From IMG/VR virus record IMGVR_UViG_3300046665_000548, positions 496,001 through 560,000 of that record: DNA of 64,000 nucleotides; one strand, given 5' to 3'. The stretch's first letter is position 1, and every line of letters starts with the position of its first letter. Positions 5,193 to 60,306 of the stretch are shown piece after piece. The notes under the pieces are model-generated. The model worked only from the letters and a program-made list of their open reading frames with translations. It did no database searches and was not told where the DNA came from. Made by a program: the position numbers and the translations under genes.

Positions 5193-5747
5193 CTAGATCG
5201 CGACGAATTTCTCAGACGAAAGCAGTTGTTTGAACTTGGCTGCATGTTGCGGAAGACGAACGCACCATTCTTCTATCTCTTGCGGAGAAGCGTAGAACGC
5301 CATCAAGATGTTTGAAATTCCAGTGATATCAGAGTAGGAACGCCACTCCTCTTCCTCCATCCCATAGTGGGAATAAGGCTCTAGCCAGAGTTGAGATGAC
5401 TTTAGCTGTAAGATCAGTCCTTTTTTCTCGTAATGGCTTCCTGAATAATTATCAGTGACCCATTTGATGTACTTGGCTGTCTTATTATCGGCCTTCAACC
5501 CGAACTTCATGATTTCACGACCATCTCGATCACAAGCAAAGCTCTTCGCAGTGTTGAGGTCAGTCGTGAGTGAAACGCCCGCGTCCTCTATGCCGCTTGC
5601 CTGTTTGGCCTTCAATATCCCAGAGCGAAGAATCGATAAGCCTGATACCAAGCTAGTTCCGTGATATAGAACCGCTGGAATATTGGACTCTTCTTCCTCA
5701 TACTCCTCGGGTTCGTCGGCTTCTCTGATCAAGTCACGTAGTTTCAT
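5193..5747 (-). CDS. Putative ADP-ribosyltransferase-fold protein
   Basis: VLYHGTS, GVSLTTD and EEEEW motifs in ART H-S-E order; N-terminus MKLRDLIRE. Confidence 0.6.
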   Translation of the reverse strand: MKLRDLIREADEPEEYEEEESNIPAVLYHGTSLVSGLSILRSGILKAKQASGIEDAGVSLTTDLNTAKSFACDRDGREIMKFGLKADNKTAKYIKWVTDNYSGSHYEKKGLILQLKSSQLWLEPYSHYGMEEEEWRSYSDITGISNILMAFYASPQEIEEWCVRLPQHAAKFKQLLSSEKFVAI

Positions 5748-5764
5748 AGTGGATATTTATTCGG

Positions 5765-5962
5765 CTAATATCCCAATTTGTCCAGGAGAGCATTCATCTC
5801 CTCTTCCGCTCTACGGTGTTTTCGTTCGGAAGCTTGATCGTACAACTCATTCGCTCCTGCACCATGATAGTCGCAGGAGATTCCACACGCTGGGCAATGC
5901 TCAGTCGAAATCGTCTCGACATATTTGTCGGAAGAACAATTCCAGCATTTCTCGCGCTTCAT
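5765..5962 (-). CDS. Small zinc-ribbon protein
   Basis: MKREKCWNC...CPACG; ATGA overlap with the clpS stop. Confidence 0.55.
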   Translation of the reverse strand: MKREKCWNCSSDKYVETISTEHCPACGISCDYHGAGANELYDQASERKHRRAEEEMNALLDKLGY

Positions 5963-6255
5963 GCTTCTTCGGCCGTGCACAACAGTGGATGATTGAACTG
6001 CTCAGCGATATTTCGGACTTGAGTTGACTTGGTGATGGCGATCTCTTTGGTGTAAAGACCAACCGTCGCCTTGCCCGCACTGTGAACAGTCAGCATGATC
6101 TGCGTTGATTCTTCAACACTCTTGTGAAAAACCTGCATCAACACCTTGGTGACAAAATCCATAGGTGTGAAATCATCGTTGTGAAGGATGATCTTCCACA
6201 TGGAAGGCGTCTTAATAGTCATCCGAGTTGCAGTATCAGTTGCCGTATTTGACAT
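5959..6255 (-). CDS. clpS: Clp protease adaptor ClpS
   Basis: PSMWKIILHNDDFTPMDFVTKVL...IMLTVHSAGKATVGLY; canonical ClpS core. Confidence 0.93.
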   Translation of the reverse strand: MSNTATDTATRMTIKTPSMWKIILHNDDFTPMDFVTKVLMQVFHKSVEESTQIMLTVHSAGKATVGLYTKEIAITKSTQVRNIAEQFNHPLLCTAEEA

Positions 6256-6320
6256 GAACGAAAATCCAATCCGAAATTACGAAAACGAATTTTAGTAGTT
6301 CGTTTCGTTAAAAGCAACTT

Positions 6321-6920
6321 TCAATCTTTTTCAGGCAACGTGTTCGGAGGAGGGATGAAGTCTATATCCGCGTCACTATCATCATCCGTGTCAGATTGCC
6401 CGGTCGCGCCGTTGCCCAGTTTTGCGTCTCTACCCGGTTTGCTGCGCTTTCCCTTCTTGCCTTTACCTTTGCCTTCTTGTCCAGCCTCGGCCTCGTCTCC
6501 ATCCTCGTCATCATCGCCCGTCCCGCCTTTCATATAGACGGTCTTACCTTCGCCAACTTTTTTCTTGGCCTGTTCGACCTTCTTATGGGCTTCGCGCGAA
6601 TAGGGTATCTGGATCGAACGCGGCTCTTTGGTGCCCGGCTCGATGATCCACAGGTAAATTGCCCCAGGATCGCCTTTACCCGAAATTGGTTCACGCGCAG
6701 CACCAAAGATGAATTGAAACTCTGCGGGCGCTTTAGGCAGCTTGACCGACCATCCAAGGGCGGCGCGGAATGTCACAAACGACACACAGGCGCACACCAA
6801 GCTCATGATAATGAATCCTGACTTGGCTGCCCAATGAAGACGGCTGTAGATGACCCCGATGAGCAAAATCACCATCAAGAACATCGTGATCAGGGTAATT
6901 GTACCAGAGGTGAAATCCAT
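6321..6920 (-). CDS. Membrane protein with soluble C-terminal domain
   Basis: Two N-terminal TM segments, IYLWI...EPRSIQIPYS, low-complexity acidic/basic tail. Confidence 0.75.
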   Translation of the reverse strand: MDFTSGTITLITMFLMVILLIGVIYSRLHWAAKSGFIIMSLVCACVSFVTFRAALGWSVKLPKAPAEFQFIFGAAREPISGKGDPGAIYLWIIEPGTKEPRSIQIPYSREAHKKVEQAKKKVGEGKTVYMKGGTGDDDEDGDEAEAGQEGKGKGKKGKRSKPGRDAKLGNGATGQSDTDDDSDADIDFIPPPNTLPEKD

Positions 6921-7603
6921 TATCTGGGGTCCATTGTAGTGGGTTCACGTAGTTTGACCGGCAGTTCTTTAGTAAGATTTACGACTTCGCCTTCTGGTGT
7001 CACGGTAAACCTTATCAAATGAACCTCTTCGCGGTTATTCGAAATTGTGCTTGATCCCTCAAACACTTTCTTCACCCTGGGATTCAGTTTGTCTATTCGA
7101 AGCTTCACATCGAATGGAGGAACCGGATGATAGCCAGTATCACCACCGGACGAGTCGCGATTCCCGTTTCCAGAAGCTTGGCCTGAGCGAACCGCGTAGA
7201 GATGAGCATTGACTACGTATTCGCCTGGGCGAATACCTCGAATGGCAACTATCTCCTGGTTATTAGGGACAACGACCTTCTTGCCATCGACAACGACCGT
7301 GTTGTTTTTCCAACCAAGGTCATCGCGTTCCAGATTTAGGAAGCCAACTTCCTTGTTGGAATAATACAGCATCTTTCCATCTGGGTCTCTCATCCAAATG
7401 TCCACGTCGTAATTGAGTTCAGTTGCCCATTCCATGGTGATCATAAATTCCATCTTTGGCTTCACGCCGTCGTCTTTTTTCTGTTCTGGAGAAATCATCA
7501 GAAACAGCGCAAAGCATGTCACAAGAACAGCTTTTGCGAACGTCAGCGCAAAGTTTGTAATGGCATCGGCCGTGTCGTCTACTTTGCGTCTGCGCGATCT
7601 CAT
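6920..7603 (-). CDS. Single-pass membrane protein with beta-rich extracytoplasmic domain (ExbD-position partner)
   Basis: N-terminal TM, MEW...DVDIWMRDP and LERDDLG motifs; translationally coupled to a MotA/ExbB-like gene. Confidence 0.7.
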   Translation of the reverse strand: MRSRRRKVDDTADAITNFALTFAKAVLVTCFALFLMISPEQKKDDGVKPKMEFMITMEWATELNYDVDIWMRDPDGKMLYYSNKEVGFLNLERDDLGWKNNTVVVDGKKVVVPNNQEIVAIRGIRPGEYVVNAHLYAVRSGQASGNGNRDSSGGDTGYHPVPPFDVKLRIDKLNPRVKKVFEGSSTISNNREEVHLIRFTVTPEGEVVNLTKELPVKLREPTTMDPR

Positions 7604-8349
7604 GAGCGGTTCTCAAGATACGGAATGATATGTGTTTCGCTGATGACCGTGGCCACGTCGAGAGTTTCTTCGACGCCCTCGTTGAGTAAGCGACCATTGA
7701 CGTTCAAAGCAATTTTGAACAAGAAGCTTGCCGTGCAAGGGATGAAGGCAACCGCGATACCAGCGAAGAATGCTCCTAGATTATTCCTCATAGCATCCAA
7801 GTTCACGCCAGCCTGCATGAAAGGCCAGAACGCCATCACGACGCCGCCTACAGTGGCAAGGATGCCGATCCAAATGATCTGCGATGCGAAGAATTCACCA
7901 ATGCTCGCGTTGCGTTCCAGCTTCGAAGCGAGAACATCCATCAGAATGCGTTGATCGATGCGATGCTTGGGATCGTTCTTCGCACGGTCGCACAAAGCAG
8001 AGACGTGGTTGGCGAACGGAGATGCAGCTATTCTAAAATGACTACCATTCTGGCTCACAAGAACCACCGCGTCATCGGTACTCATAACATCTGATAGAGC
8101 ATTCTCTCGAAGCCATTTCAGTGCTTCGGTAAGACTACGATGTTGTTTAGATACAGAGAGCACCTGCACGCCTGCGAATATTTCTCCGAAGACGTACACC
8201 ACTAGGAGCACAAGGCTCAGGTGAGAATGATCGTGCCTGATCATAATCTGAGGCAGACCAAGAAAAGTCATCCCGATGATCGCAAAGATCACCACAGTGA
8301 TGTACAGGAGCCAAGATAGGAATAATTTATGTGTGATTAGCATTTGCAT
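7600..8349 (-). CDS. MotA/TolQ/ExbB-like membrane protein
   Basis: Two N-terminal TMs plus GILATVGGVV and GIAVAFIPCT helices; start moved to 8349 because of the GAGGGAG SD and upstream TAAATA. Confidence 0.6.
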   Translation of the reverse strand: MQMLITHKLFLSWLLYITVVIFAIIGMTFLGLPQIMIRHDHSHLSLVLLVVYVFGEIFAGVQVLSVSKQHRSLTEALKWLRENALSDVMSTDDAVVLVSQNGSHFRIAASPFANHVSALCDRAKNDPKHRIDQRILMDVLASKLERNASIGEFFASQIIWIGILATVGGVVMAFWPFMQAGVNLDAMRNNLGAFFAGIAVAFIPCTASFLFKIALNVNGRLLNEGVEETLDVATVISETHIIPYLENRS

Positions 8350-8463
8350 TACACTCCCTCGGACATTTGCCGCGAGAAGGTATTTAGTCCGCATTTAACC
8401 GGATTTTTGGGCTGTGCTCAAACTATCAGCGTTTGCAACAAGCTTAGGCTGGAACCGCTGTCG

Positions 8464-8492: not shown

Positions 8493-8498
8493 GGTTCA

Positions 8499-10148: not shown

Positions 10149-10151
10149 ACC

Positions 10152-10690: not shown

Positions 10691-12745
10691 ATGACGACAT
10701 CGCTTGATTTCAACAAACTAAAGCACGCAGTGACGCAGCAGTTCGCAAATATTTCGCGAAGCGATCTCTTCTGCGTCGAGATCGACCGTGACGAAATCTG
10801 GCAGACTTACCTGAATGCTTTCCCGGCCGGAACGAATCCGATCTTTCGGGAGCGCACCGAGCATGACTGTTCGTGCTGTCGTTCTTTCATCCGCACCATC
10901 GGCGGCGCGGTCACTATCGATGACAAGGGCAAAGTTGTTTCGCTTTGGGACTTTGTTGTCGATGATCCGGCTTATGCCGCCGTGGCCAAGGTCATGTCGG
11001 AATACGTTCACACCAAGGCCATCGATAACCAGTTCATCCATTTCGAGTCCAAGGTCGGAACGGATCAGAACCGCGAACAGACCGAGGATGGCACGATCAT
11101 CACGTGGAAGCATTTCTACGTTGATCTTCCGCGCCGCAATTCCGGTGTGCCGTTCTTCATGGACAACAAGGCTATTGGCACCAAGCTGGGTGAGATTCGT
11201 GGAAATCACGATGTGTTTCTGCGCGGCGTGGTCGAACTGACTGTCGATGCCGTAGAGACGGTAGTCGATATCATCAAACAGGGCTCGCTCTATCGCGGCA
11301 ATGAATACGCCGAAGGTGTCCAAGATTTCTTGAAGCTGAAGAGGCAATTCGACAAGCTCGCACCGGATCAGCGTGATGGCTGGGTATGGGCGAACGCGAA
11401 CAAGAAAGGCGCTCGCATCCGCAACACCGCTATCGGCACGTTGCTGATCGACCTGTCTGACGGTAAGGACCTCGAAGAGGCCGTGCGCAAGTTCGAAACG
11501 TCGATCATGGCACCGACGAGTTTCAAGCGGCCCACCGCGCTGGTCTCTCCCAAGATGGTTGAGGCGGCGAAGGATCAGGTCGAGAAGCTTGGCCTAACCT
11601 CGGCGTTGAGCCGTCGCTATGCATCGCTGACCGACATCAGCGTGAAAGATATCATTTTCGCGGATCGTTCGGCCAGCAAGGCGATGAAGGACGGCGATCC
11701 GTTCGCGGATATTGCGACAAAGGCGAGCACGCCAAAAGACCTGGGCAAGATCGAAGAAATGCCCATCGAGAAATTCATCAAGGATGTCGTGCCGAATATC
11801 AATTCGCTCGAAATCATGGTTGAAAACAAGCATACGCCGAACTTCGTCAGCTTGATTGCTCCTGTCGATCAGGATGCAGGCAGACTGTTCAAGTGGGGCA
11901 ACAATTTCTCGTGGTCCTACAATGGCGACATGGCTGACTCGATCAAGGAGCGCGTCAAGCAGGCTGGCGGCAATGTTACCGGCGATCTGTGCTGCCGTCT
12001 GGCGTGGTTCAACTACGACGATCTGGATTTCCATCTGATCGAACCGGGTGCGCCTCGTCACAGCAAGTACGAAATCTACTTTCGTACTCGTGGCTCTGCC
12101 TCTCCGGGCGGCGGTCGGCTGGATGTTGACATGAACGCTGGCGGCGGTTCTTCGCGTACTCCGGTGGAGAACATCTTCTACGCCACTCGACGCACGATGA
12201 AGGAAGGGGAATACGAACTCTCCGTCAATCAGTTCGCGCGACGAGAGAGCAAGGACATTGGTTTCGAGGTCGAAATCGATTTCCTCGGGGACGTACAGCG
12301 GTTCGTTTACGATAAGGCGGTCAGTGGCCGCATTACCGTCGCGAAGTTCAAGTATACGCACGCCAACGGGATTGAAATGATTCAATCATTGCAGTCCACC
12401 CAGGCGTCGCGTGAAATCTGGGGCGTCAAAACACAAGCCTTCCAGAAGGTTAACGTCTTGATGCGCTCGCCAAACCATTGGGATGGCGAGAAGGTTGGCA
12501 ATCAGCATTACTTTTTCATGCTTGACGATTGCCAAAACGAAGGTCAGGCTCGCGGATTCTTCAATGAATTCTTGAAGGATGACCTTGAAAAGCATCGCAA
12601 GGTGCTAGAGATCGTCGGCTCCAAAATGAAGACTGAGGAGACGCCGAACCAACTGTCCGGGCTAGGATTCTCGGATACTAAGCGGGCCGAGATCATTGCT
12701 CGGGTCAAAGGCAACTTTACACGCACCATCAAGGTGATGGTGTAA
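10691..12745 (+). CDS. Large conserved-type phage hypothetical protein
   Basis: 684 aa; HDCSCCRSFIR Cys cluster, LAWFNYDDLDFH and LDVDMNAGG motifs. Confidence 0.85.
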   Translation: MTTSLDFNKLKHAVTQQFANISRSDLFCVEIDRDEIWQTYLNAFPAGTNPIFRERTEHDCSCCRSFIRTIGGAVTIDDKGKVVSLWDFVVDDPAYAAVAKVMSEYVHTKAIDNQFIHFESKVGTDQNREQTEDGTIITWKHFYVDLPRRNSGVPFFMDNKAIGTKLGEIRGNHDVFLRGVVELTVDAVETVVDIIKQGSLYRGNEYAEGVQDFLKLKRQFDKLAPDQRDGWVWANANKKGARIRNTAIGTLLIDLSDGKDLEEAVRKFETSIMAPTSFKRPTALVSPKMVEAAKDQVEKLGLTSALSRRYASLTDISVKDIIFADRSASKAMKDGDPFADIATKASTPKDLGKIEEMPIEKFIKDVVPNINSLEIMVENKHTPNFVSLIAPVDQDAGRLFKWGNNFSWSYNGDMADSIKERVKQAGGNVTGDLCCRLAWFNYDDLDFHLIEPGAPRHSKYEIYFRTRGSASPGGGRLDVDMNAGGGSSRTPVENIFYATRRTMKEGEYELSVNQFARRESKDIGFEVEIDFLGDVQRFVYDKAVSGRITVAKFKYTHANGIEMIQSLQSTQASREIWGVKTQAFQKVNVLMRSPNHWDGEKVGNQHYFFMLDDCQNEGQARGFFNEFLKDDLEKHRKVLEIVGSKMKTEETPNQLSGLGFSDTKRAEIIARVKGNFTRTIKVMV

Positions 12746-13610: not shown

Positions 13611-13613
13611 AAG

Positions 13614-25721: not shown

Positions 25722-25777
25722 CCATTATTTATGAGCATAAATGGATAACTATTAGACTGATCTTAGGAGAGATTGAG

Positions 25778-26068
25778 ATGATTAACCTGATAATCGATTT
25801 GCTGATGGACGGCAGTTTGAAGGCGGAATACTTTGATCCCAGCATTGCGAATGAACCACTCGCTCTAGGCGTCGTTCAGCTTACAGACGAAGATGATGCA
25901 TCATTCGATATCATTTGGAGCCTTCACGGCGGCAATTACGTCGCGTTCGATACGAACCCGATTATGCTTGCCGTGCTGGACAAACTGGATGGAACGCTGG
26001 AATCAGGTCGTTTGTTGTTGAGCCAGGAAGCAGTCGCGACGCTGACCGGTCTGGCCGACGCGCTTTAA
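25778..26068 (+). CDS. Hypothetical acidic protein
   Basis: 96 aa with AGGAG SD. Confidence 0.7.
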   Translation: MINLIIDLLMDGSLKAEYFDPSIANEPLALGVVQLTDEDDASFDIIWSLHGGNYVAFDTNPIMLAVLDKLDGTLESGRLLLSQEAVATLTGLADAL

Positions 26069-26075
26069 ATACGTC

Positions 26076-26621
26076 ATGGATATTCGCGAGATAAAAGCTA
26101 TCGTTGATAGTCGTGTAGCCGCGTCTGCCCCGCTGTATCGCTGGGTGGACGATAAGGGCGCTCTCGCCTATATCCGTCGCGACGCCATGGTTGGTCGCAC
26201 CAAACACTACATTCCAAAAGCCATGATCCCTAACGTCAATAAGTACGGTCGCGCAACATGGTTCACCGGTCTGAGCTTCAGCCGAGATGACGCCAGATGG
26301 AATATCGCAGGTAGTTGCTGTTTCGTCGTAAGCGGCATCCCGAATGATTGTTTCAACATAAACGGACAGGCCGTCTACAACTACGGGCAGGCCGTAGCAT
26401 CGCGGTCTTGCGGACCAGACGAACTACAACAGTACGAACAAAACGCGGTCGAGGACAGTCAGAACGAGCCGGACGAGACATTCGTTGTAGGAAACATCCA
26501 GATGCTGTCGAAATATCTAGCTGAGATCAGAATCAAAAATAGCATTCCTCCTAAAGTTCTTGCTGCGGTCAGATCGTATAGCGAGCAAAACAACATTCAG
26601 CTTACGGTGGTCGGGCAATGA
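26076..26621 (+). CDS. Putative ADP-ribosyltransferase-fold protein
   Basis: PLYRWV (R), GLSFSRD (SxS), NEPDETFV (E); R-S-E order. Confidence 0.5.
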   Translation: MDIREIKAIVDSRVAASAPLYRWVDDKGALAYIRRDAMVGRTKHYIPKAMIPNVNKYGRATWFTGLSFSRDDARWNIAGSCCFVVSGIPNDCFNINGQAVYNYGQAVASRSCGPDELQQYEQNAVEDSQNEPDETFVVGNIQMLSKYLAEIRIKNSIPPKVLAAVRSYSEQNNIQLTVVGQ

Positions 26622-27001
26622 ACATGCGCGATATCATGACGTTGATCGAAGGTGATGGAAAATTTCCGAAACCATTCCATCCTTTCTATCTACCTCCTTC
26701 GGCCATCAAATTTTACGACGATCCATATTCCGGAGCCGGAGATGACGGCTACACGGTAGCCGACCTCAAGGCAGAGGTTGAAGAAGATGGTGAAATTCTA
26801 TACTGCATTCAGGTTGGCAAGAGCCGTCTTGAAATGCCGAAGGGTGACCATTCGATTTTCGCGTTCAACGGCAATCATCGACTTGCCGTCGCAAAAGAAT
26901 TGAACCTGCCCGAAATCATCTGCGAAAACGCTTCAGGTATGGACGATGCTTATCCGCTGTCCATTGAAGAGATCGTTCAGTTAGGAGGAAGATTGCTGTG
27001 A
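26618..27001 (+). CDS. ParB/Srx-like domain protein
   Basis: FAFNGNHRLAVAKELN motif; N-terminus MNMRDIMTLIE. Confidence 0.6.
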   Translation: MNMRDIMTLIEGDGKFPKPFHPFYLPPSAIKFYDDPYSGAGDDGYTVADLKAEVEEDGEILYCIQVGKSRLEMPKGDHSIFAFNGNHRLAVAKELNLPEIICENASGMDDAYPLSIEEIVQLGGRLL

Positions 27002-27660
27002 AAATGCGCGATATGCTGAATCTCATTGAAGGCGTGGGTACTGAAGCTCAAAAGAACGTCGAGCTAAAGCGTCTCGAAGCTGAACGCCTTCGTCTTACTC
27101 ATCGCCTCACCAACAGCGGGCTTCAGTCAGATAAACAAACCATCATCACAAAGCTTGAAGCCATCGAAGCACAGATCGAAAAGCTGAGTGGAGGATCGAC
27201 ACCCCTGGAAGAAGGGTCGATGCCGCCGAACGTTGAAGCATTCATGAACGAATACTACGAAGCAACGGCCGATCATCCGTTCTCGCGGAACGCTCGCGTG
27301 TTCAATAACATCGCGACATTGGAGGTTAGCCCGTTCGGTCCCGGCGTTCACATCTCGGATGTTCTCGCCCTAGAGAAGCGCCAGGGCGCGGGAAAGGCCG
27401 CAATGCAGTTCCTATGCGGACTCGCGGATAAACACGGCGTCACGCTGGACCTGACCGCCAAGGCTTACATGGATAAGCACAGCAGCCCGGAGACGATGGA
27501 TACAAAGAACCTGAAGAAATGGTACGTCAGCTTCGGCTTCGTATCCCAGGGCGGCTACGAGGAAGATGGTTTCGACATGGAGCGAAAGCCTAAGAAGGCG
27601 TTGAAGCTCGGGGGAGCCGACAAGACGATCAAGCTGCGTGGATTCCGCAAGGATCACTAA
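26998..27660 (+). CDS. Coiled coil plus GNAT acetyltransferase domain
   Basis: HISDVLALEKRQGAGKAAMQFLCGLAD (acetyl-CoA motif A), LKKWYVSFGF. Confidence 0.7.
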   Translation: MKMRDMLNLIEGVGTEAQKNVELKRLEAERLRLTHRLTNSGLQSDKQTIITKLEAIEAQIEKLSGGSTPLEEGSMPPNVEAFMNEYYEATADHPFSRNARVFNNIATLEVSPFGPGVHISDVLALEKRQGAGKAAMQFLCGLADKHGVTLDLTAKAYMDKHSSPETMDTKNLKKWYVSFGFVSQGGYEEDGFDMERKPKKALKLGGADKTIKLRGFRKDH

Positions 27661-27683: not shown

Positions 27684-27717
27684 GTTGACGCGCCAAATCT
27701 CGTCGGTTATATAAATA
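27684..27717 (+). promoter_or_regulatory. Overlapping sigma70-type and late-type promoters of the tRNA operon
   Basis: GTTGAC-N17-TTATAT plus a perfect T4-late-like TATAAATA at 27710-27717. Confidence 0.75.
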
Positions 27718-27924: not shown

Positions 27925-28000
27925 GGGGATGTAGCTCAATGGTTAGAGCGTCCGCCTGTCGAGCGGAAGGTTGCGGGTTCGAGTCCCGTCATTCCCGCCA
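27925..28000 (+). tRNA. tRNA-Asp(GTC)
   Basis: Acceptor GGGGATG/CATTCCC, anticodon arm TCCGC-CTGTCGA-GCGGA, TTCGAGT loop, encoded CCA. Confidence 0.95.
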
Positions 28001-28001
28001 C

Positions 28002-28076
28002 GCTTCCATCGTCTAGTGGTTAGGACGTTGCCCTCTCAAGGCAAAAACGCGGGTTCGAATCCCGCTGGAAGCACCA
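28002..28076 (+). tRNA. tRNA-Glu(CTC)
   Basis: GCTTCCA/TGGAAGC, TTGCC-CTCTCAA-GGCAA, TTCGAAT loop, CCA. Confidence 0.95.
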
Positions 28077-28090
28077 CAAATTTTGGTTAC

Positions 28091-28168
28091 GGGACGCTCC
28101 TCTAAACGGAATAGGAGCCCTCTTTTTCACAGAGGAGAATGTCGGTTCGAGTCCGACGCGTCCTGCCA
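28091..28168 (+). tRNA. tRNA-Glu(TTC)
   Basis: GGGACGC/GCGTCCT, CCTCT-TTTTCAC-AGAGG, TTCGAGT loop, CCA. Confidence 0.9.
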
Positions 28169-28169
28169 C

Positions 28170-28245
28170 GCATCCATCGGCTAAAGGTAAGGCCGCTCGC
28201 CTTTCAAGCGAGAAATCTAGGGTTCGAGTCCCAGTGGATGCACCA
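28170..28245 (+). tRNA. tRNA-Glu(TTC), imperfect T-stem
   Basis: GCATCCA/TGGATGC, CTCGC-CTTTCAA-GCGAG, CCA; unpaired A28219 in the T-stem. Confidence 0.9.
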
Positions 28246-28594: not shown

Positions 28595-28606
28595 CTTTGT
28601 ATTTAT

Positions 28607-38700: not shown

Positions 38701-39588
38701 TTAAAAGTCGTGCGAGTTGATGTTCTTGAACAGTATCTTTACCTTGACCTGTTCGCGTGCCTTGATGGCCATCGGTAGCATCTGATCGGGTTGGGCGTTC
38801 GAAAGGAACTGCATCAGTTCAGTCTTTCGAGCGTCCTGTGGTGTATTCGGGATCGTTTGGCCGATCTTGTAGAAATCGAAACCGGGCAGCACTGCGACCT
38901 TTTGCGGTGCGTATTGAGCCGTGCACATAAAGAATGCGATCTGCCCGGCGACCTCCGTGAACAGACACGGTGCGGCCTCCTTGGGCGCGAGGCGAATGTG
39001 CGCTGAGCACGAATTGAATTCACCACGAGCAGTCAATGAGTGGCCCTTGTTGCCGCCCTGCGCCATCGAGACCTGCGGCAGCGCCTTCTCTAACTCTTCC
39101 TGAGTCGGCTTATGACCCTGGGCGATGTTCGGAATTACTTTCAGCAGGTTCTGCTTGAATGTGGATAGCATCTTTCCATGCGTAAAGTAGTCATGGATGG
39201 TGCGGAATACTGTGTTCTCGTCGGCCGTGAAATTCGGATGATCGCTCGTCGTGCCAGAATAGATCAGCAGACGGTTATTGATCAGGATGTCGTACAGCAT
39301 TGCACGAATCATCATGCGCGGCTTGTGGCCAAACTCCGTGTAAGGGTCTTCCTGAGTGAACTGGATGTCGATGCCAGTGCCCTTGACGCGCTTGAATAGA
39401 ACGTCGAGTGTGTGTCGCTTGGCAGCATCCCAGTGCTTATCCGCATTTGGATCATGAATCGGTGCAGCATCGTATGCTTCGGCCAGCGTTACCACAAAAG
39501 CGGCAAGCTCAGGAAGGCTGTGGATGTAAACACCCTCGGTGAGAGGAATTCCAGAAAGTTGAAGGAGGCGCGAGAGATCGTCAGACAT
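38701..39588 (-). CDS. Hypothetical protein with HDxxxH putative metal site
   Basis: FRTIHDYFTHG...GEFNSCSAH...FTEVAGQ; start at ATG 39588, 5 nt after TAAATA. Confidence 0.7.
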   Translation of the reverse strand: MSDDLSRLLQLSGIPLTEGVYIHSLPELAAFVVTLAEAYDAAPIHDPNADKHWDAAKRHTLDVLFKRVKGTGIDIQFTQEDPYTEFGHKPRMMIRAMLYDILINNRLLIYSGTTSDHPNFTADENTVFRTIHDYFTHGKMLSTFKQNLLKVIPNIAQGHKPTQEELEKALPQVSMAQGGNKGHSLTARGEFNSCSAHIRLAPKEAAPCLFTEVAGQIAFFMCTAQYAPQKVAVLPGFDFYKIGQTIPNTPQDARKTELMQFLSNAQPDQMLPMAIKAREQVKVKILFKNINSHDF

Positions 39589-39592: not shown

Positions 39593-40102
39593 CTATTTAT
39601 AGCGGCTCTTGCGATCCTTGAAACGTTCGGCCAGGACCCGGCGCGCTGCCTCACGCCCATCTTCCATCATAATGGCGTGCATTGTGAGGCGGGTAAAGCT
39701 CAAGCGGCGATCAGCGGCACGCATGATGTCCACGATACCCCAAGGATCATAGTTCGCTTCTAGAGGCTCTAGAAGCTGATCACGGGGACAATCACGGTAA
39801 GCGTTGACCAGATGCTCGAAGACATTGTTGCCTCGACCCCAGCGACTGCGCTTAGTCCCCATATGCCCTCCTGACTTGAGAACATAGAGTTGCGGCGTGA
39901 CGCGACCGAACCAACTCACGCGACGCTCGACCGGAACATCATCCCCCATAAAGTCCCAGGGGAACGACATAAGCGTCTCCCCTTTCATTATGAATTCATA
40001 GGTCCCGTTGGACCAATGATCGGAAGGAGACTTGTAAGGTAAGTGGACGAGGCGCATTTCAAGCGCGGGCAAGAACACCCGCTCTATTACGGATACAGAC
40101 AT
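39593..40102 (-). CDS. Hypothetical protein
   Basis: 169 aa ORF. Confidence 0.7.
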   Translation of the reverse strand: MSVSVIERVFLPALEMRLVHLPYKSPSDHWSNGTYEFIMKGETLMSFPWDFMGDDVPVERRVSWFGRVTPQLYVLKSGGHMGTKRSRWGRGNNVFEHLVNAYRDCPRDQLLEPLEANYDPWGIVDIMRAADRRLSFTRLTMHAIMMEDGREAARRVLAERFKDRKSRYK

Positions 40103-41714: not shown

Positions 41715-41885
41715 GGGAACACCTTTGGTTCAGTCTAATTTGATCTCGTGACGTAGACGTGCGAAACCTCCGCCTAAGCGAGGCAAGTCTCCAGCACATC
41801 ATTCATGAGATTAGACGTTCAAGGCAGTGTTCTCCTATACTGTTCCAACCTTATCCATATTGGTGACTTCCGTCAACTCTAAATA

Positions 41886-42221
41886 ATGGCCATGCGAGAT
41901 TTTGAACTATGGGAGATCGTTAAACGTCGGGTTACGCCACTAGGCCAACCTGTCGATGGACGACGCTTTGCTATGGAAGAAATCTCACCGCCAACAACGT
42001 TGGACCTTCACGGCTATACTATTCAGGAAGCGCATCAGATTACTCAGCGATTCCTGGATCACCGCACGGATACTGTTACGGTCATCACCGGCCGCAGTGG
42101 AGAAATCTGTAAAGAATTCCCCACATGGGCCGCGCTCCATCCTAACGTCCGGTCATGCCGGAGTTTGAATGGAGGCGGAGCATTCCTCATCAAGCTGGGC
42201 TCTTCGAAGCGGCATCGCTAA
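41886..42221 (+). CDS. Stand-alone Smr/MutS2-domain protein
   Basis: LWEIVKRRVTPL, TLDLHGYTIQEAH, VTVITGRSG, GGGAFLIKL. Confidence 0.88.
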   Translation: MAMRDFELWEIVKRRVTPLGQPVDGRRFAMEEISPPTTLDLHGYTIQEAHQITQRFLDHRTDTVTVITGRSGEICKEFPTWAALHPNVRSCRSLNGGGAFLIKLGSSKRHR

Positions 42222-45847: not shown

Positions 45848-45900
45848 AGCGCAACACGCGTAGATGCCTAAATAAGCTACCGAACTGTTGGTGGAATTAT

Positions 45901-46128
45901 ATGCGCTTCTACGAAATATCAAGCGGACTTAGGATGCCGGTCAATGAGGAAGAGCAAGCTCTTCTTGATCGGGCTGTCGAAAAACACAGCGTTCATCGAT
46001 CACAACTATCCGACCGTGAGCAGGAAGTTGCCCGTTTGATGGTGTCGCGTGGTCTTCTCAATCGAGGGAAAGACCAAGAAGGAATATACTACACGCCAAA
46101 TTCGGCGGCAGATTTGTGGAGATATTGA
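45901..46128 (+). CDS. Hypothetical late protein
   Basis: MRFYEI start; downstream of TAAATA at 45869. Confidence 0.75.
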   Translation: MRFYEISSGLRMPVNEEEQALLDRAVEKHSVHRSQLSDREQEVARLMVSRGLLNRGKDQEGIYYTPNSAADLWRY

Positions 46129-49788: not shown

Positions 49789-50208
49789 ATGATTCTTCTT
49801 GAACTCTTTGACGCGAACGATCCGCAATTGGATGATGGCCAGGACCTTCGGAAGGACCTGAAGAACGATGCCATCGATATCCTTATGCCGTTCGCGGCCC
49901 ATGGGGTCCCATTCGTGACAGTTCAGAACGTCATCGATAAACTCGGTGAAGCAAAGTCTGGTCTTGTCATTGATCGTGCTCTTGTCATGGACATCCTAAA
50001 TCCAGAAGAAGTAAAGATCGTCAAAAAGATCGAGGGTGATAAAATCTGGCTTACTATTCCGGAGCCAGTTGATGGCCAGCGTGAGGTAACTCAACAGAAG
50101 CAGGAACAAGACAAGCAGAAGACCATCAACATGGCTCAACAGCAGGCAAAGAAACAAGTCGCCGCTCCTCCTGCTCCAGCGCCAGCCGCACCACCTCCGC
50201 CACAATAA
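49789..50208 (+). CDS. Hypothetical late protein
   Basis: MILLELFD start; Gln/Pro tail. Confidence 0.75.
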   Translation: MILLELFDANDPQLDDGQDLRKDLKNDAIDILMPFAAHGVPFVTVQNVIDKLGEAKSGLVIDRALVMDILNPEEVKIVKKIEGDKIWLTIPEPVDGQREVTQQKQEQDKQKTINMAQQQAKKQVAAPPAPAPAAPPPPQ

Positions 50209-53125: not shown

Positions 53126-53890
53126 ATGCGATATGATTCATTTGCCTACCTTTGGCCACCCCGTCCGGATCAGCCGATCCCGCAGACGCTGTTGCCGTAT
53201 TACGAAAACAGCCTGGGCTACGTTGCTCAAGCGAAGAAGAACGGCACCTGCAACATCATCGCGGTAAAGCCCTCATTGTGGCGCGCGGATAACAATGCGG
53301 ACGACTGGATGGTCTGCATGAGCCGCCACAAGGAAGATCACAAGCTCTGGACGCCAACGGCGGCGTCGAGTGCAATCTTCAAGGGCCTCCCCGGCGAGGG
53401 CTGGTACGTATTCGTGGCAGAGCTTCTGCACAGTAAGCTCAAGGAAGGTCCCAAGGACACCAATTTCATCAACGACATTCTCGTTGCGGATGGCGATTAC
53501 CTGATCGGTAAGACGTTCGGTGAGCGCCAGTATATGCTCTACGATCTCTTCCTGGGCGAAGAGGCCGCCGATTATCTTTCTCTCGAAGAGACCAATTTGA
53601 AGGGTCGTGATCTACTCAATCGCAATAACGCGCTCCAGAATTTGCGTAAGGATGATATTTTTGTTGCGCCGACGCACTATGTGCTGGACGGCAATACGTG
53701 GCTCGCCAAGAACTTCGCCTCCGATTTCTCCAAGCTGTACAATTCGTTAGTCACTCCTGAGGACGAAGGTCTTGTCTTGAAGAACCCTGAGGCCAAGCTG
53801 TCGGCGTGCATTCGCGCCTCTTCGAACGCCGGTTGGCAGGTCAAGTGTCGCAGGCAAATCGGACAGGGCGGAAAGAACTATTCGTTCTAA
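53126..53890 (+). CDS. ATP-dependent ligase adenylation domain (no OB domain)
   Basis: QAKKNG (motif I), FVAELL, INDIL, DEGLVLK, WQVKCR. Confidence 0.7.
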   Translation: MRYDSFAYLWPPRPDQPIPQTLLPYYENSLGYVAQAKKNGTCNIIAVKPSLWRADNNADDWMVCMSRHKEDHKLWTPTAASSAIFKGLPGEGWYVFVAELLHSKLKEGPKDTNFINDILVADGDYLIGKTFGERQYMLYDLFLGEEAADYLSLEETNLKGRDLLNRNNALQNLRKDDIFVAPTHYVLDGNTWLAKNFASDFSKLYNSLVTPEDEGLVLKNPEAKLSACIRASSNAGWQVKCRRQIGQGGKNYSF

Positions 53891-53911
53891 ATACGGTTAT
53901 GGGAGATTTGT

Positions 53912-54328
53912 ATGCAGCGTCTTGAAGAACTCCGTCACCGCATGCGCGTGAAGCAGGCTAGCAACGATCAACTCGCTGCTATTCTTGCCGTACTCGGTGG
54001 GGAATGGCATGGGGTGCATGATTCGGAAGCAATCCTTTCGCTGCTGCGAAGCAAGTTGCAATTCTCGAATCGTCCTGATCTCAACGACGTGCAGTCTGTC
54101 CCGGAGCTTGTTGCTCGCCTGGGGGTCAAGCTTGATCACATCGACCCCGCTCTGCTCGAAGAGGCTCGTCTTGCCGACAAGGAATTCCATCGCAAGTTGG
54201 ACGAGGATTTCCGCCGCGCATCGGAAGAGCATCGAAACACGCCAGAACATCAGCAGTTCTTGACCGAGGAACGCGCTCGCTTTGGTACCCAGTATGACGA
54301 ATGGTTTCCAGGCCGAAAGGACTCATGA
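53912..54328 (+). CDS. Hypothetical protein
   Basis: 138 aa; GGAG SD. Confidence 0.7.
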   Translation: MQRLEELRHRMRVKQASNDQLAAILAVLGGEWHGVHDSEAILSLLRSKLQFSNRPDLNDVQSVPELVARLGVKLDHIDPALLEEARLADKEFHRKLDEDFRRASEEHRNTPEHQQFLTEERARFGTQYDEWFPGRKDS

Positions 54329-55422
54329 GGTTTTTTGAGGTAGCAAATCAGCAAAGAAACGTCATAGCTACAAAGCGATTTCGACAAGAAGCGGCTAAGT
54401 TCTGTCGCGGCTATCCCGGTCTAGATCGAGTTATCTCTGATTTCATCATGCACCGGTCGGTGCAAAATTCAGCACCATGGAAGAAAGATGCGCCGTTCGC
54501 TGGCGGTGACAAGAACGTGCGCGGCTTATGGCATGTTCATTTTTATCACGGGAAGGTCATCGGCATATACGATGTCACCCCGACTGAACTCCGACTGATT
54601 ACCGTTTGCGAGCACAGTGAATTTGATACGCCAAAGGCTGTACAGACATTAGGCAAATATTACCGGTCCCTTACGGCGGATGATTTCTCTCCATATCAGG
54701 TCTCGACCGAGGCAGCCGCGCCGCAGCTTACTGCGGATGAGCGATCCGAAATTTCGAATCTCATGTATGAGCTTGCCTCCGGTTCCGAGGAAGATCGCGC
54801 TATTCTGGTACAGGTTGCTAGTGGCAATAGCACCGGTTTCCTCCAATGGGCTCAGATGCTCATACAGGACGCTATGAGCCCCACACAGAAGGACGAAGCG
54901 GTTATGGCTGCCTTCGGTGGTCAGCCCGGCCTAGCCGCCTCAGCGGCCCGCGTATTGAAGGAATTGGGCCTTTCCGAGAGCGCGCAATTCGTGCGCCCGA
55001 ACCAGCAAGAAACACATCGTGAGCATGAAGAGGTTCACTACCAGTTGAACCATCACCAAGCCGATCATCCAGAGTGGGTCAACGACCACCTGCACCAGCT
55101 AAAGGACAGAAAGGCTTTCTACAAAGCCGTCCGTAATGGCAAGGTCTATAACGTCTCTCCGAGCGCGGCTCGCGCCATCAACAACACGGGCGATCACCAT
55201 ATGGACGTTCGTAAGGATGGCCAAGCGCACAAGATGGCCCGCGTCCAAAAGCAATTCAACAGTCCCGGCACGCAAATCACTACGCCGATTGTCCTGCACA
55301 ATAAGGCAACGGGAGAAAGGCATCTGCTGGCGGGTCATCATCGGTTGACGCACAACTCGCAAGTCCTGGGTAAAAATACCCAAGTGCTGCACTTGGAATA
55401 CCCTTCGCGAGATACCCACTAG
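54325..55422 (+). CDS. RelE/YafQ-like domain fused to ParB/Srx-like domain
   Basis: KDAPFAG...LWHVHF...IGIYDV...LRLITVCEHSEF; C-terminal TTPIVL...HLLAGHHRL. Confidence 0.6.
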   Translation: MRFFEVANQQRNVIATKRFRQEAAKFCRGYPGLDRVISDFIMHRSVQNSAPWKKDAPFAGGDKNVRGLWHVHFYHGKVIGIYDVTPTELRLITVCEHSEFDTPKAVQTLGKYYRSLTADDFSPYQVSTEAAAPQLTADERSEISNLMYELASGSEEDRAILVQVASGNSTGFLQWAQMLIQDAMSPTQKDEAVMAAFGGQPGLAASAARVLKELGLSESAQFVRPNQQETHREHEEVHYQLNHHQADHPEWVNDHLHQLKDRKAFYKAVRNGKVYNVSPSAARAINNTGDHHMDVRKDGQAHKMARVQKQFNSPGTQITTPIVLHNKATGERHLLAGHHRLTHNSQVLGKNTQVLHLEYPSRDTH

Positions 55423-57177: not shown

Positions 57178-57178
57178 T

Positions 57179-59080
57179 ATGCGTTATATTGTTGCCATTA
57201 ATAGAGACGCTAGTCCTGCCGATTTCCTTGCCGAATTAGCTAGCCGTGGCATCGAGGTAACGACTGATTTTCAGGGTCTCACTACATATTTCGAAGTAGA
57301 GGCTGATCCCGATCAGAAGCTCGACATTGAAGCATTACCTTCAGTGGTGGTCATGACTCGATCTGATACTGAAGTCAGCTTGCAAGCAAAACAGAATATT
57401 GGTTTGGACTTTGATACGTTGCCTACACCATATGTGAGCTTCGGTCGCCCATGGCATGGTAACTGGGGCTTGTGGCGCATTGCTAACGCGGAAAACACAA
57501 TTAAGTCTCAGCCGCCTGTGGGTACTCCAAACGTTCAATATACCTATTCGCGAGATGGTTCTAACGTTGACATCTACGTCGTAGATTCTGGCACCTATTG
57601 GTCGTCGTCACTTGGCGGCGGAGGTTCTTTACTTGGTAGAAATTCCCCGCCTACTAAGAAGGGCCAGAGAATTTTTCCTCTCTATGATTTCTATCGTCAG
57701 TCATCCGATCCTCTTTATGGTTCGTGCGTCGGTGGTATCAATCACGGCGAAATCTGTGCGGCGTTTACTGGCGGGTTGATGCAAGGCCCGGCTCGCGGAG
57801 CCCGCATTTACGTATCGCGCTGCTTTAACTCATCTTCAAGCACAAGTTCCGCTGTGGCACATGCCATGGACGCATGTGTTCTGCACCACCGACTGAAGAA
57901 GCTCTATGGCGTCAATCGCCCATCCATTGTCTCGATGAGCTTTGGTGGAGACGATAACAGCCAAATTCCAGCGCTTGATGCAATGATCCAAGAAGGTATG
58001 GTCATCGTAACTTCGGCTGGTAATGATGGAATGAATCTGAGCGACATAACGCTTTATCCTGCAAACTATGAGCCCGGCATCACCGTTGGCGCGACAGGCA
58101 TCCAGGATGAATGGGCGTTTTTCTCCAATTACGGATCGAACATCGACATCTTCGCTCCAGGCCGCCGTCTCCCTGGATTTGTGAATGAAGAAACATCAGG
58201 CACCACTAATCTGGTTAGCGGAACGAGCTTCGCGGCCCCGTTTGTTGCTGGTGTGGCCGCTCTTCACCTACAAGATTCCGCCATTGGTACGGACTCCTCA
58301 ACACAAAACGCTGTTCGTGGCTGGCTGGTAGATAACGCTTTTCGTGATCAGATTGATTTCGGAACAGATATTGATTCTTCGACAACGCCTAATCTTCTCT
58401 TGAATAGCTTCTACACCAGTGTCAGCGGTAGCATTACTTGGATCGGCCCTGGATATAACGCAGCAGCGCCCTTTGAGGCGGGCACATTGACCAGTTTCAC
58501 TGGCGTTAAATGCCAAGCTACGGCTTCTACTAATCAGACTGTTAAGTTCGAGCTTGCTGGTGGCGTACTTCCGTGGGGTATTGTCCTCAGCACCGATGGC
58601 ACCTTCAACGGCACACCTGAGCCAAAGGCAAACTCGGTCAGGGACATGGTGACGATCCGAGCGTACGTTGACGCCGAGAATGGTCAGCCAGCTTTGGAGC
58701 AATATCATAGCTTCTGGCATCAACTTCCAGCAAGCACCTCGATTACGGTTGAGAAGCTTCGCTGGCTCACGCAGGCCCGCCTTACGTCGATTCTTCTCGG
58801 CTTCCCGTATGTTCACCAGGAACTGCGCGCGGAAATTAACATTGGAGGATCGATAGAGTATGATCTGAACAGTGGTGTTCTTCCTACTGGCCTCACGCTT
58901 GATAGCAGCGGCACTCTTTACGGAGAACCAACTGAAGCAGGTACATTTGTTTTTGAGGTCGCCGCCAAGGGACCGTCGAATACTCAAGTTACCCGTGAAT
59001 TCACGTGGAAAGTTTTAGGTCATTACGAGGTCATTGTTGACGGCCCAGTGGAATTCTCTGGAGCCATCGAGCTTAACTGA
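57179..59080 (+). CDS. Subtilisin-like S8 serine protease with Ig-like C-terminal domains
   Basis: YVVDSG (D), NHGEIC (H), SAGN, GTSFAAP (S); LPWGIVLSTDGTFNGTP and LPTGLTLDSSGTLYGEP repeats. Confidence 0.9.
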   Translation: MRYIVAINRDASPADFLAELASRGIEVTTDFQGLTTYFEVEADPDQKLDIEALPSVVVMTRSDTEVSLQAKQNIGLDFDTLPTPYVSFGRPWHGNWGLWRIANAENTIKSQPPVGTPNVQYTYSRDGSNVDIYVVDSGTYWSSSLGGGGSLLGRNSPPTKKGQRIFPLYDFYRQSSDPLYGSCVGGINHGEICAAFTGGLMQGPARGARIYVSRCFNSSSSTSSAVAHAMDACVLHHRLKKLYGVNRPSIVSMSFGGDDNSQIPALDAMIQEGMVIVTSAGNDGMNLSDITLYPANYEPGITVGATGIQDEWAFFSNYGSNIDIFAPGRRLPGFVNEETSGTTNLVSGTSFAAPFVAGVAALHLQDSAIGTDSSTQNAVRGWLVDNAFRDQIDFGTDIDSSTTPNLLLNSFYTSVSGSITWIGPGYNAAAPFEAGTLTSFTGVKCQATASTNQTVKFELAGGVLPWGIVLSTDGTFNGTPEPKANSVRDMVTIRAYVDAENGQPALEQYHSFWHQLPASTSITVEKLRWLTQARLTSILLGFPYVHQELRAEINIGGSIEYDLNSGVLPTGLTLDSSGTLYGEPTEAGTFVFEVAAKGPSNTQVTREFTWKVLGHYEVIVDGPVEFSGAIELN

Positions 59081-59088
59081 GGATAAAG

Positions 59089-59565
59089 ATGAATCCGTTT
59101 CTCACCTCTCCTCGCGAGAGGTTGTCGCTGTGGAAGACATTGCGGTCTTCCCTGGCAAGTATGCCCGAAGAAGAACAGCTTGCCGTCGTGGCGAAATATT
59201 GGGCTCAAGCTCCTCTTCATAAGTTCGCATACGATGCTGAGAAGCCAAATACTTGGCCATCTCCGTGGGAGATGATCAGCGAAGGCGAATGGTGTGCGCG
59301 CTCAGTAGCTATCGGCATCGAGTTCACTTTGCGTCTTGGTGGTTGGAATCCTGATCGCATCTCTTTGCATCTGATCAGAGACCTGGATCGATCCGACATG
59401 CTGTTCGTCGTAGAAATTGACGGCAAATACTATCTAAACTACGATCACGGTCTTGTCTCAACAGTACCAAATACTAAAAGAGATTTTGTTTGTTCATGGA
59501 AATTCAACGGTAAGTCTTACCGAGAAAGTCATTTTGATATTACCAACCATTATTCAAGCGGATAA
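59089..59565 (+). CDS. Hypothetical phage protein
   Basis: 158 aa; WPSPWEMI. Confidence 0.8.
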   Translation: MNPFLTSPRERLSLWKTLRSSLASMPEEEQLAVVAKYWAQAPLHKFAYDAEKPNTWPSPWEMISEGEWCARSVAIGIEFTLRLGGWNPDRISLHLIRDLDRSDMLFVVEIDGKYYLNYDHGLVSTVPNTKRDFVCSWKFNGKSYRESHFDITNHYSSG

Positions 59566-59851
59566 GCGGGAAGTTCTCGCCCGTTACCAGTTCTCCAATG
59601 GTCGTTTCATGATGGATAGCATATCCAGACGAACATGGATTGTTAATAATCTGAAACACCAAGTACCGACACGTGATCGAGGCGATAGCCTTGGTGAACC
59701 GGTCGATTTGGAAGATATCAAAGATTTCCTAAACAATAACTGTAACGGATATTGGTCCACCCTTTTTCAGGGCGACGGTCGAGGACGAACTCGTGTTTAC
59801 TTGTTCGAGAAAGAAAATGATGCAATACATTTCAAGCTACGGTTTATTTGA
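59453..59851 (+). CDS. Hypothetical protein, FKL family (start probably later)
   Basis: Ends VYLFEKENDAIHFKLRFI. Confidence 0.6.
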   Translation: MSQQYQILKEILFVHGNSTVSLTEKVILILPTIIQADKREVLARYQFSNGRFMMDSISRRTWIVNNLKHQVPTRDRGDSLGEPVDLEDIKDFLNNNCNGYWSTLFQGDGRGRTRVYLFEKENDAIHFKLRFI

Positions 59852-60306
59852 TGAAGATTAGTGAAGTAGAAAAGAAGCCAACCGGTACCTATGCTGCGGT
59901 TCGTTTCTCTGAAGATACAATTGATAGATTGCGTGACCTCCAGGACGATCTAAGCGTTCCAAATCCATTGGACCCAGACGACTTCCACACTACAATCGTG
60001 CATTCTAAAAAGCCCATCGATTGGGAAGATAAAGATTGTGATGACATCGAAGCAAAACCGCTTCGATTGGAAAAGTGGAAGACACGATCAGACAGCTACT
60101 GTCTCGTGCTACTCATCGACTGTCCTTATCTCCATGAGCGTTTTGAAAAGTCCATGGACATGGGGGCTCTGTATGATTTCCCCGACTACAAGCCACACAT
60201 CAGTCTATCGTATGATGTTGGTAAAGACTTTGACATTGGCTCTCCTGAACTGGATTTTGCAATACAGTTGGACCACGAGTACAGTGAACCTCTCGATCTG
60301 AACTGA
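59851..60306 (+). CDS. 2H phosphoesterase, Acb1/T4 57B-like anti-CBASS nuclease
   Basis: GTYAAVRFS...VPNPL...FHTTIVHS...GALYDFPDYKPHISLSY...EYSEPLDL; two HxT/S motifs. Confidence 0.88.
   Translation: MKISEVEKKPTGTYAAVRFSEDTIDRLRDLQDDLSVPNPLDPDDFHTTIVHSKKPIDWEDKDCDDIEAKPLRLEKWKTRSDSYCLVLLIDCPYLHERFEKSMDMGALYDFPDYKPHISLSYDVGKDFDIGSPELDFAIQLDHEYSEPLDLN

Follow-up and report, generated by a model that had tools for sequence, protein, structure and literature searches.

Tagged proteins in the window

The 64,000-bp stretch of DNA analysed here (the window) covers bases 496,001-560,000 of a single 607,744-bp IMG/VR record (IMGVR_UViG_3300046665_000548; 51.7% GC), and four of its predicted proteins begin with a 9- or 11-residue peptide, here called the tag, that recurs on mostly unrelated proteins across the same genome. 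Coordinates are those of the window unless preceded by "genome". A hexamer-based gene caller made for this analysis (translation table 11) predicted 880 genes in the genome, with a coding density of 87%. The genome is assigned to a giant phage of the T4 superfamily on the strength of its genes for a prohead protease of the gp21 type and a capsid protein of the gp23 type. Among isolates, the capsid protein is closest to that of Sinorhizobium phage Phosso (469 kb), with 80% identity, and then to that of Agrobacterium phage Atu_ph07 (490 kb), with 69%; Rak2-like phages and PA5oct are next at about 65%. The contig with its T4-type head genes exceeds both Phosso and Atu_ph07 in size. No GenBank phage matched when 12 kb of the window were searched by megablast, and among public sequencing runs a small share of the locus was found in one freshwater metagenome DNA run only.

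Three of the tagged genes form an operon headed by a late-promoter-like TAAATA hexamer (26066-26071, plus strand) 4 nt ahead of the ATG at 26076. The first gene (26076-26621, plus strand) encodes a protein of 181 amino acids (aa) with a diverged 11-residue tag, MDIREIKAIVD (26076-26108), that has Asp for Glu at position 11. The second (26618-27001, plus strand) encodes 127 aa, made up of the canonical tag MNMRDIMTLIE (26618-26650; 33.6 bits) and, behind it, a ParB N-terminal/sulfiredoxin-like domain. The third (26998-27660, plus strand) has a GTG start and encodes a 220-aa protein in which the canonical tag (M)KMRDMLNLIE (26998-27030; 27.7 bits) is followed by a coiled linker and a GNAT-like domain. 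A tRNA-Asp and three tRNA-Glu genes lie immediately downstream of the operon (27925-28245). The fourth tagged gene (5193-5747, minus strand) encodes a 184-aa protein that resembles ADP-ribosyltransferases (ARTs): behind the 9-residue tag MKLRDLIRE (5721-5747) come a linker rich in acidic residues and an LYHGTS motif, and a TAAATA hexamer (5754-5759, minus strand) lies 6 nt ahead of its ATG at 5747.

A previous interpretation of the window, made from its letters alone and referred to here as the sequence-only reading, had listed eight proteins with a shared tag. All eight N-terminal peptides are present where it placed them. The proteins at 5193-5747, 26076, 26618 and 26998 belong to classes supported by the genome-wide statistics given below, whereas those beginning MRFYEI, MRFFEV, MKISEVE and MILLELF score at background and are treated separately.

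The domain labels of the four tagged proteins differ in strength. The 26618 protein looks like a ParB N-terminal/sulfiredoxin-like domain in its ESM Atlas comparison (feature score 0.96, 176 shared features, template modelling (TM) score 0.52-0.58 to ParB_N clusters over residues 17-112), in agreement with the label first given to it; the fold starts at about residue 17, which leaves the tag outside it. The GNAT label of the 26998 protein likewise held: over residues 106-198 the protein shares 39% identity with Streptomyces phage proteins annotated as acetyltransferases, and it is paralogous to tagged genes at genome 113670 and 116522 and weakly homologous to the Atu_ph07 virion protein gp63. 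The two ART labels are weaker. The 5193-5747 protein matches ART-PolyVal (PF18760) with an E value of 0.008 and 17.4 bits, below the curated cut-off of 31.2, and an RNA 2'-phosphotransferase (Tpt1) model with an E value of 1e-4. Although it aligns around LYHGTS with a tagged ART-PolyVal paralogue at genome 117043, the PF18760 score is under the cut-off, and we therefore regard it as ART-like and not as a proven ART-PolyVal member. For the 26076 protein an ADP-ribosyltransferase fold is possible and is a structural lead only: its ESM Atlas model has TM scores of 0.56-0.63 to DarT, ART-PolyVal and DUF2971 clusters, and profile-profile comparison (hhalign) with the ART family of the genome gave a probability of 35%. 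A tblastn search of this protein against phages found no match. Searches of Pfam (E up to 10), NCBIfam, PHROGs and PDB sequences returned nothing useful for the proteins at 26076, 26618, 45901, 49789 and 54325. Single-sequence AlphaFold (AF2) models had a mean predicted local distance difference test score of 34.0 for 26076 and 37.7 (unusable) for 54325.

The C-terminus of the 26998 protein carries a motif, IKLRGF(N/R)(K/R)xH (27628-27660), that is conserved in the homologues P0002, P0004, P0005 and P0006; in P0006 the IKLRGF core stands directly behind the N-terminal tag instead of at the C-terminus. It was considered as a second general signal and rejected, since within the genome it is confined to the 26998 family.

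The tag across the genome

The 11-residue tag is a real signal. Genome-wide it heads at least 16 proteins, with the consensus MNMRDLMxLxE or, written as residue classes over 16 members, M-[NKD]-[MI]-R-[DE]-[LI]-[MIL]-x-L-x-E. All 16 have M1, R4 and E11, and 15 of them have L9. Of the 880 predicted N-termini, 14 match the pattern M-x-[ILMFV]-R-[DE]-[ILMFV], where 0.67 would be expected from its internal frequency. The sequence-only reading had proposed a model of the tag as a check, and such a model bears it out: a position matrix trained on 12 tagged N-termini found 15 N-termini at or above its threshold of 15 bits, against 0.006 expected, and recovered four outside the training set (genome 115923, 116522, 142775 and 250285). 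Constraint falls on position 4, on positions 6-7 and on the L-x-E at positions 9-11. The last of these is the cleavage signature of T4 gp21, and the residue that follows is usually Gly, Ala or Ser; the exception to the Leu/Ile-x-Glu ending is the 26076 protein of the window, with I-V-D.

Several features argue that selection works on the peptide, and not on a DNA element or as leftover paralogy. Mean pairwise identity falls from 52% at residues 2-11 to 9% at residues 12-20, and by BLAST most tagged proteins are mutually unrelated past the tag. Its codons vary synonymously (AAC/AAT, CGC/CGA/CGT, GAC/GAT, CTN, GAA/GAG), and the DNA upstream of tagged genes is not conserved. Operon-internal genes with ordinary overlapping or Shine-Dalgarno starts bear the same tag as first genes led by TAAATA. 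The invariance or near-invariance of R4, L9 and E11 is likewise a sign of constraint at the level of the peptide.

A 9-residue relative of the MRYxEIIxE type heads about eight further proteins. MRY.[ED][IL] is found at 7 N-termini against 0.03 expected, and the 9-residue class that takes in MKLRDLIRE at 4 against 0.02. With the 11- and 9-residue classes pooled, the tagged cargo amounts to about 25 proteins. A much looser pattern, M-[KRND]-hydrophobic-x-[DE]-[ILVM], fits 30 N-termini, where 2 would be expected.

At least 20 of the tagged genes, the greater part of the set, are found beyond the window. Nine of them belong to an operon of ten genes (genome 111185-117636), and a second tagged cluster occupies genome 141.8-144.6 kb. 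A clear ART of the set, an ART-PolyVal protein at genome 117043 (Pfam E 6e-14, 53.5 bits), joins through Pfam and the LYHGTS alignment a family that BLAST assembles from genome 113038, genome 142236 and window 5193-5747. GNAT domains are recognised by Pfam at genome 111185 and 115923 (E 3e-5 and 4e-6), and a GNAT-like family comprises genome 113670, 116522, 138566 and 188021 together with window 26998. None of the tagged proteins, which are 88-245 aa long, has more than one recognisable domain. Five tandem paralogues of 70-74 aa that begin MRTDLT (MRTDLTE in three of them) immediately precede the ten-gene operon, at genome 109837-111169.

Conservation of the tag in related phages

Four homologues of the 26998 protein in other assemblies (P0002, P0003, P0005 and P0006) retain the tag, with the starts MKMREIMTLLE, MRMREIMKLVE, (M)MRDLIKLIE and MKMRDLINLVE, while their bodies are only 36-77% identical. 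A syntenic 220-kb contig has five consecutive tagged genes; its orthologue of the 26076 protein is 66% identical and has the canonical start MKMRDIMTLVE. In a T4-like fragment of 41% GC, MNMRDLIDLFE begins an 864-aa protein, beside which are the T4-tag-like starts MKSLHDYIAE and MKSFRDYLSE. The tag is kept across genomes of 40-54% GC. A DNA pattern for the 11-residue tag had no match in the genomes of Phosso and Atu_ph07. Run over IMG/VR, a degenerate DNA pattern for MNMRD[LI] gave 19 single hits, three of them with the tag ending hydrophobic-x-Glu; this is about the chance number, and the hits therefore give no measure of how widespread the tag is. Among the papers in the collection searched, none describing such tags in the Atu_ph07/Rak2 lineage was found.

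TAAATA sites and possible late expression

Of the 210 TAAATA hexamers in the genome, 121 are found no more than 60 nt ahead of a predicted start. The block of head genes has one such site ahead of it, 48 nt before the start of the acidic protein encoded beside the protease, and further sites stand before the leading genes of tagged operons and clusters. This placement fits T4-type late promoters, from which the tagged genes may be expressed late. The sequence-only reading had stated that several of its eight starts follow TAAATA; this is so for three (5747, 26076 and 45901) and not for the other five.

An unusual spacing is common. Exactly 4-5 nt downstream of the hexamer stands an ATG in 69 of the 210 cases, and 56 of these 69 ATGs begin open reading frames (ORFs) of at least 50 aa. 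In the window the sites in this spacing analysis were 26066-26071, 27712-27717 and 53888-53893 on the plus strand and 5754-5759, 25726-25731, 28600-28605 and 39594-39599 on the minus strand. A Shine-Dalgarno-like motif precedes 9 of 57 genes with the 4-5-nt spacing, compared with 478 of the 823 other genes. Phosso and Atu_ph07 have only the usual TAAATA spacing of 17-45 nt. If TAAATA acts as a T4-type late -10 element, transcripts would start on the A of the ATG or beside it, and the late mRNAs would therefore be leaderless.

Such starts bring up an explanation in which the peptide itself has no function and the tag is a by-product of gene history or translation, either a 5' cassette spread by recombination or a sequence favoured at initiation, for instance on leaderless late mRNAs. 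Many tagged genes do stand in tandem arrays and some are paralogous; the leading gene of an array begins 4-8 nt past TAAATA and has no Shine-Dalgarno motif; and the loose pattern is found preferentially on genes whose start closely follows TAAATA (Fisher p = 2e-11). Against this, a cassette or an initiation sequence accounts poorly for synonymous variation in a tag that is kept at GC contents from 40 to 54%, for the same tag on operon-internal genes with overlapping or Shine-Dalgarno-led starts, and for an abrupt loss of identity after residue 11 in a peptide with R4, L9 and E11 (nearly) invariant. We consider the by-product explanation very unlikely.

Head maturation and the T4 precedent

In T4, the first 10 residues of the internal protein IPIII suffice to bring foreign proteins into the prohead core (PMC9026906, PMC3012670). 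Residues 4 and 7 of this targeting sequence serve targeting and residues 8 and 10 serve cleavage by gp21 (PMC9026906, PMC3012670), and Asp at position 10 permits packaging but blocks cleavage (PMC9026906). The internal proteins of T-even phages are described as diverse anti-defence proteins with only the targeting sequence in common (PMC9026906, PMC3012670). In the T4 record, ipII and ipIII both carry MKTYQEFIAE|A, and ipI has a version of 19 residues.

The giant phage has the corresponding machinery. Its 215-aa prohead protease matches Peptidase_S77 (E 1e-27) and its capsid protein matches Gp23 (E 2.5e-93), and the head block runs in the order acidic protein, protease, coiled-coil scaffold, capsid. 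The cleavage site of T4 gp23, L-T-E65|A, aligns with L-N-E|A in the capsid protein of the giant phage, which suggests that the protease has the same specificity as that of T4; L-N-E|A is accordingly a predicted cleavage site.

The two systems share a 9-11-residue N-terminal peptide that ends hydrophobic-x-Glu on unrelated proteins; genes for a gp21-type protease, a gp22-type scaffold and a gp23-type capsid protein; and a cargo that includes an ADP-ribosyltransferase, which in T4 is Alt. The TAAATA hexamers of the giant phage are putative late promoters of the T4 type. They differ in that the consensus is MNMRDLMxLxE and MRYxEIIxE here and MKTYQEFIAE in T4, in that several length classes of the tag coexist in the giant phage, and in that about 25 cargo genes are present as opposed to 3-4 in T4. 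The cargo here is mostly enzyme-sized, whereas that of T4 is small and basic, and the ARTs, known here from sequence alone, are of the ART-PolyVal type and not of the Alt type. On the capsid-targeting reading the system is functionally that of T4, with differences in tag sequence, scale and cargo.

Two further systems bear comparison. The polyvalent proteins (Iyer et al. 2017, PMC5512222) have effector domains of the same kinds (ART-PolyVal, ParB-like, GNAT and possibly BECR/RelE-like) and the same predicted logic, in which effectors packaged in the virion are delivered with the DNA and blunt host defences. The present proteins are separate, small and tagged, whereas polyvalent proteins are giant multidomain fusions held in place by modules of the MuF or portal type. 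A polyvalent protein combines two to fifteen effector domains, a number that none of the tagged proteins reaches. In phiKZ-like giant phages (SPN3US, phiKZ), as predicted here, many head-internal proteins are cut after Glu by a gp21-related protease (PMC9026906, PMC5694885). They differ in having another cleavage motif and longer, non-uniform propeptides, where the present tag is uniform and at the extreme N-terminus, and the present phage is a virus of the T4/Rak2/Atu_ph07 type.

Proteins with analogous tags in the Atu_ph07 virion proteome

A virion proteome of Atu_ph07 has been published (PMC6102473, Supplementary Table S5) with 140 listed proteins. We called the genes of this phage anew and mapped 137 of the 140 by molecular weight (within 0.02 kDa) and gene order. 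Atu_ph07 has an analogous 8-residue tag, M-[RK]-[LWYFIM]-x-[DEQ]-[LI]-x-E (e.g. MRLIDLLE and MRWEQLTE). Proteins with this pattern are in the virion list in 19 of 20 cases, compared with 118 of the 794 others (odds ratio about 109, Fisher p = 1e-14). The listed proteins include gp381, in which the tag is followed by an ART-like VYHGS motif, gp63, which has a GNAT-like domain in common with the window 26998 protein and its paralogues, and gp205 (MDFRQIRALLE|G), which is encoded beside the protease. The proteome paper (PMC6102473) makes no mention of an N-terminal motif. In Atu_ph07 analogous tags mark virion-associated proteins, which by analogy supports packaging in the giant phage.

Interpretation

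The reading that we prefer is that the 11-residue peptide and its 9-residue relative (MRYxEIIxE, MKLRDLIRE) are T4-type capsid-targeting propeptides; we give this explanation as a whole a probability of about 0.6. In the window it applies to the proteins at 5193-5747, 26076, 26618 and 26998, and not to Acb1 (59851) or to those at 45901, 49789 and 54325. The tagged proteins would be made late from TAAATA promoters, and the tag would dock them on the scaffolding core of the prohead. The gp21-type prohead protease would then cut past the terminal Glu (L/I-x-E|) and free the mature enzyme in the head. At infection, ART-PolyVal and other ART-like proteins, GNAT acetyltransferases, a ParB/sulfiredoxin-like protein and several proteins of unknown function would leave the head with the DNA and hit host targets at the very start. 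We infer that the tag docks on the core, that cleavage falls at E11 and that the cargo is ejected and acts early, and confidence declines along these steps. That the tag marks proteins packaged in the head is probable; that it is cleaved after E11 is somewhat favoured; and that the cargo is injected and acts early is a tentative proposal, at slightly worse than even odds. Following the T4 rule, the 26076 protein, with its I-V-D, would be packaged yet left uncut.

This is close to what the sequence-only reading had proposed for all eight of its proteins, namely a Glu-cleaved targeting propeptide in the manner of T4 on enzymes made late. The gp21-type protease, the L-x-E ending, the alignment of the predicted capsid cleavage site with that of T4, the TAAATA sites and the 19 of 20 in Atu_ph07 give it good indirect support for the four tagged proteins; for the other four the proposal is not supported.

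A number of points weigh against capsid targeting. The phage is uncultured and known from its sequence, and we found no public RNA run that holds the locus. The tag resembles the T4 tag MKTYQEFIAE in general shape but not in sequence, the mature proteins have isoelectric points (pI) of 4.3-9.8, unlike the basic internal proteins of T4, and the 26076 protein bears at its cleavage position the Asp that blocks processing in T4 (PMC9026906). The closest isolates, Phosso and Atu_ph07, use shorter variants and not the 11-residue consensus, which is why the proteome evidence is by analogy. That evidence has its own weaknesses: a single family of paralogues accounts for 11 of the 19 Atu_ph07 hits, and the count is 8 of 9 when it is left aside; the pattern was defined after the virion list was seen; and the virions were purified with polyethylene glycol. 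The list includes ribonucleotide reductase, single-stranded DNA-binding protein and a RecA-like protein, and in view of this purification and of such replication proteins some of its entries may be abundant contaminants.

The tag could also be a selected N-terminal signal for something other than encapsidation, such as an inhibitory propeptide, a docking site for a chaperone or adaptor, or a Clp-type degron. ART and GNAT cargo would be toxic if active in the producing cell, Atu_ph07 encodes seven Clp-family proteins, and the acidic pI of part of the cargo is a further point in favour of such a role. It leaves unexplained why the tag ends in the signature of the prohead protease and why its analogues in Atu_ph07 are on virion-associated proteins, and an inhibitory role would be compatible with capsid targeting and no replacement for it. 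We judge a signal of this kind unlikely, though less so than the by-product explanation.

Proteins injected with phage DNA act ahead of phage transcription and are thus the earliest means by which a phage counters defences and takes over its host. To our knowledge, such proteins are almost unknown outside T4, P1 and a few phiKZ-like phages. If the capsid-targeting reading is true, the effectors that uncultured giant phages inject could be predicted directly from sequence, a label readable in the sequence would point to new ADP-ribosylating and acetylating enzymes of host takeover, and the tags would give a new portable means to load foreign proteins in large capsids. The link between tag and virion in Atu_ph07 is open to a direct test in a cultured phage and in existing mass-spectrometry data.

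A broader claim is more speculative, and taken jointly its parts have slightly less than even odds. It holds that giant phages of the Atu_ph07/Rak2 lineage use lineage-specific L-x-E "zip codes" of 8, 9 or 11 residues to load dozens of enzymes into the head; that the 608-kb phage has the largest such arsenal seen, about 25 proteins with several ARTs, GNATs and a ParB/sulfiredoxin-like protein; and that many of its late genes, including the first genes of tagged operons, are expressed from leaderless mRNAs that begin at the ATG, 4-5 nt past TAAATA.

Other N-termini in the window

The remaining four proteins of the original list were ranked with the same position matrix over the 880 genes. The protein that starts MRFYEI (75 aa; 45901-46128, plus strand) matches the loose pattern only and has a tag score of -10.7 (rank 80 of 880); TAAATA at 45869-45874 sits 26 nt upstream. 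Its orthologue in Phosso begins MRFYEIKGG, and since the start is retained there it belongs with the gene. The protein that starts MRFFEV (365 aa; 54325-55422, plus strand; score -14.6), also a match to the loose pattern only, was labelled RelE-ParB in the sequence-only reading and is a candidate for that label; it has no Pfam, NCBIfam or PDB match, and BLASTP against the ParB-like 26618 protein gave nothing. The protein that starts MILLELF (139 aa; 49789-50208, plus strand) matches no pattern and scores -17.5 (rank 246 of 880).

The protein that starts MKISEVE (59851-60306, plus strand) is Acb1, a phosphodiesterase directed against cyclic-oligonucleotide-based antiphage signalling (CBASS), as first labelled: it matches Pfam Acb1 (PF23474) with an E value of 2.5e-41 and 141.2 bits, well over the cut-off of 27. 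It too matches the loose pattern only (score -10.1), and no TAAATA lies upstream of the gene. T4 Acb1 has a similar N-terminus (MMEFKDF), so that the start belongs to the Acb1 family. In T4 (11592-12411 of the record) the Acb1 gene (57B) adjoins ipI, and its start, MMEFKDFST, resembles the ipI tag MKTFKEFTST.

For these four, likeness to the tag by chance or within a family is the likely explanation, which would make them ordinary cytoplasmic phage proteins that are not packaged. MRFYEI, MRFFEV and MKISEVE have background-level matrix scores (ranks 72-150 of 880), none of the four starts is followed by L-x-E within tag length, and three of the four genes have no TAAATA upstream. The family-specific starts of Acb1 and of the 45901 protein agree with this, and the source paper on Acb1 does not mention packaging. 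On the other side, the loose six-residue pattern is still enriched about seven-fold when the strict tags are removed (about 14 N-termini against 2 expected), and some GNAT paralogues bear the full tag while others begin with a short MKIFEV or MNLSEV. There may therefore be a third, very short class of propeptide; the four proteins are not counted as tagged here.

A different N-terminus, M..L..L-[AS]-G-[ILQ] ("LAGL-type", e.g. MSDDLSRLLQLSGI), recurs at 3 N-termini against 0.017 expected: window 38701-39588 (minus strand), genome 5159 and genome 195775. The window protein, which begins MSDDLSRLLQLSGI, has 295 aa, and TAAATA at 39594-39599 lies 5 nt ahead of its ATG. The sole two Atu_ph07 proteins with an N-terminus of this type, gp111 and gp257, are both in the virion proteome. 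At 41886-42221 (plus strand) an uncalled ORF of 111 aa begins MAMRDFELWEIV; it overlaps calls on the minus strand, and TAAATA at 41880-41885 abuts its ATG.

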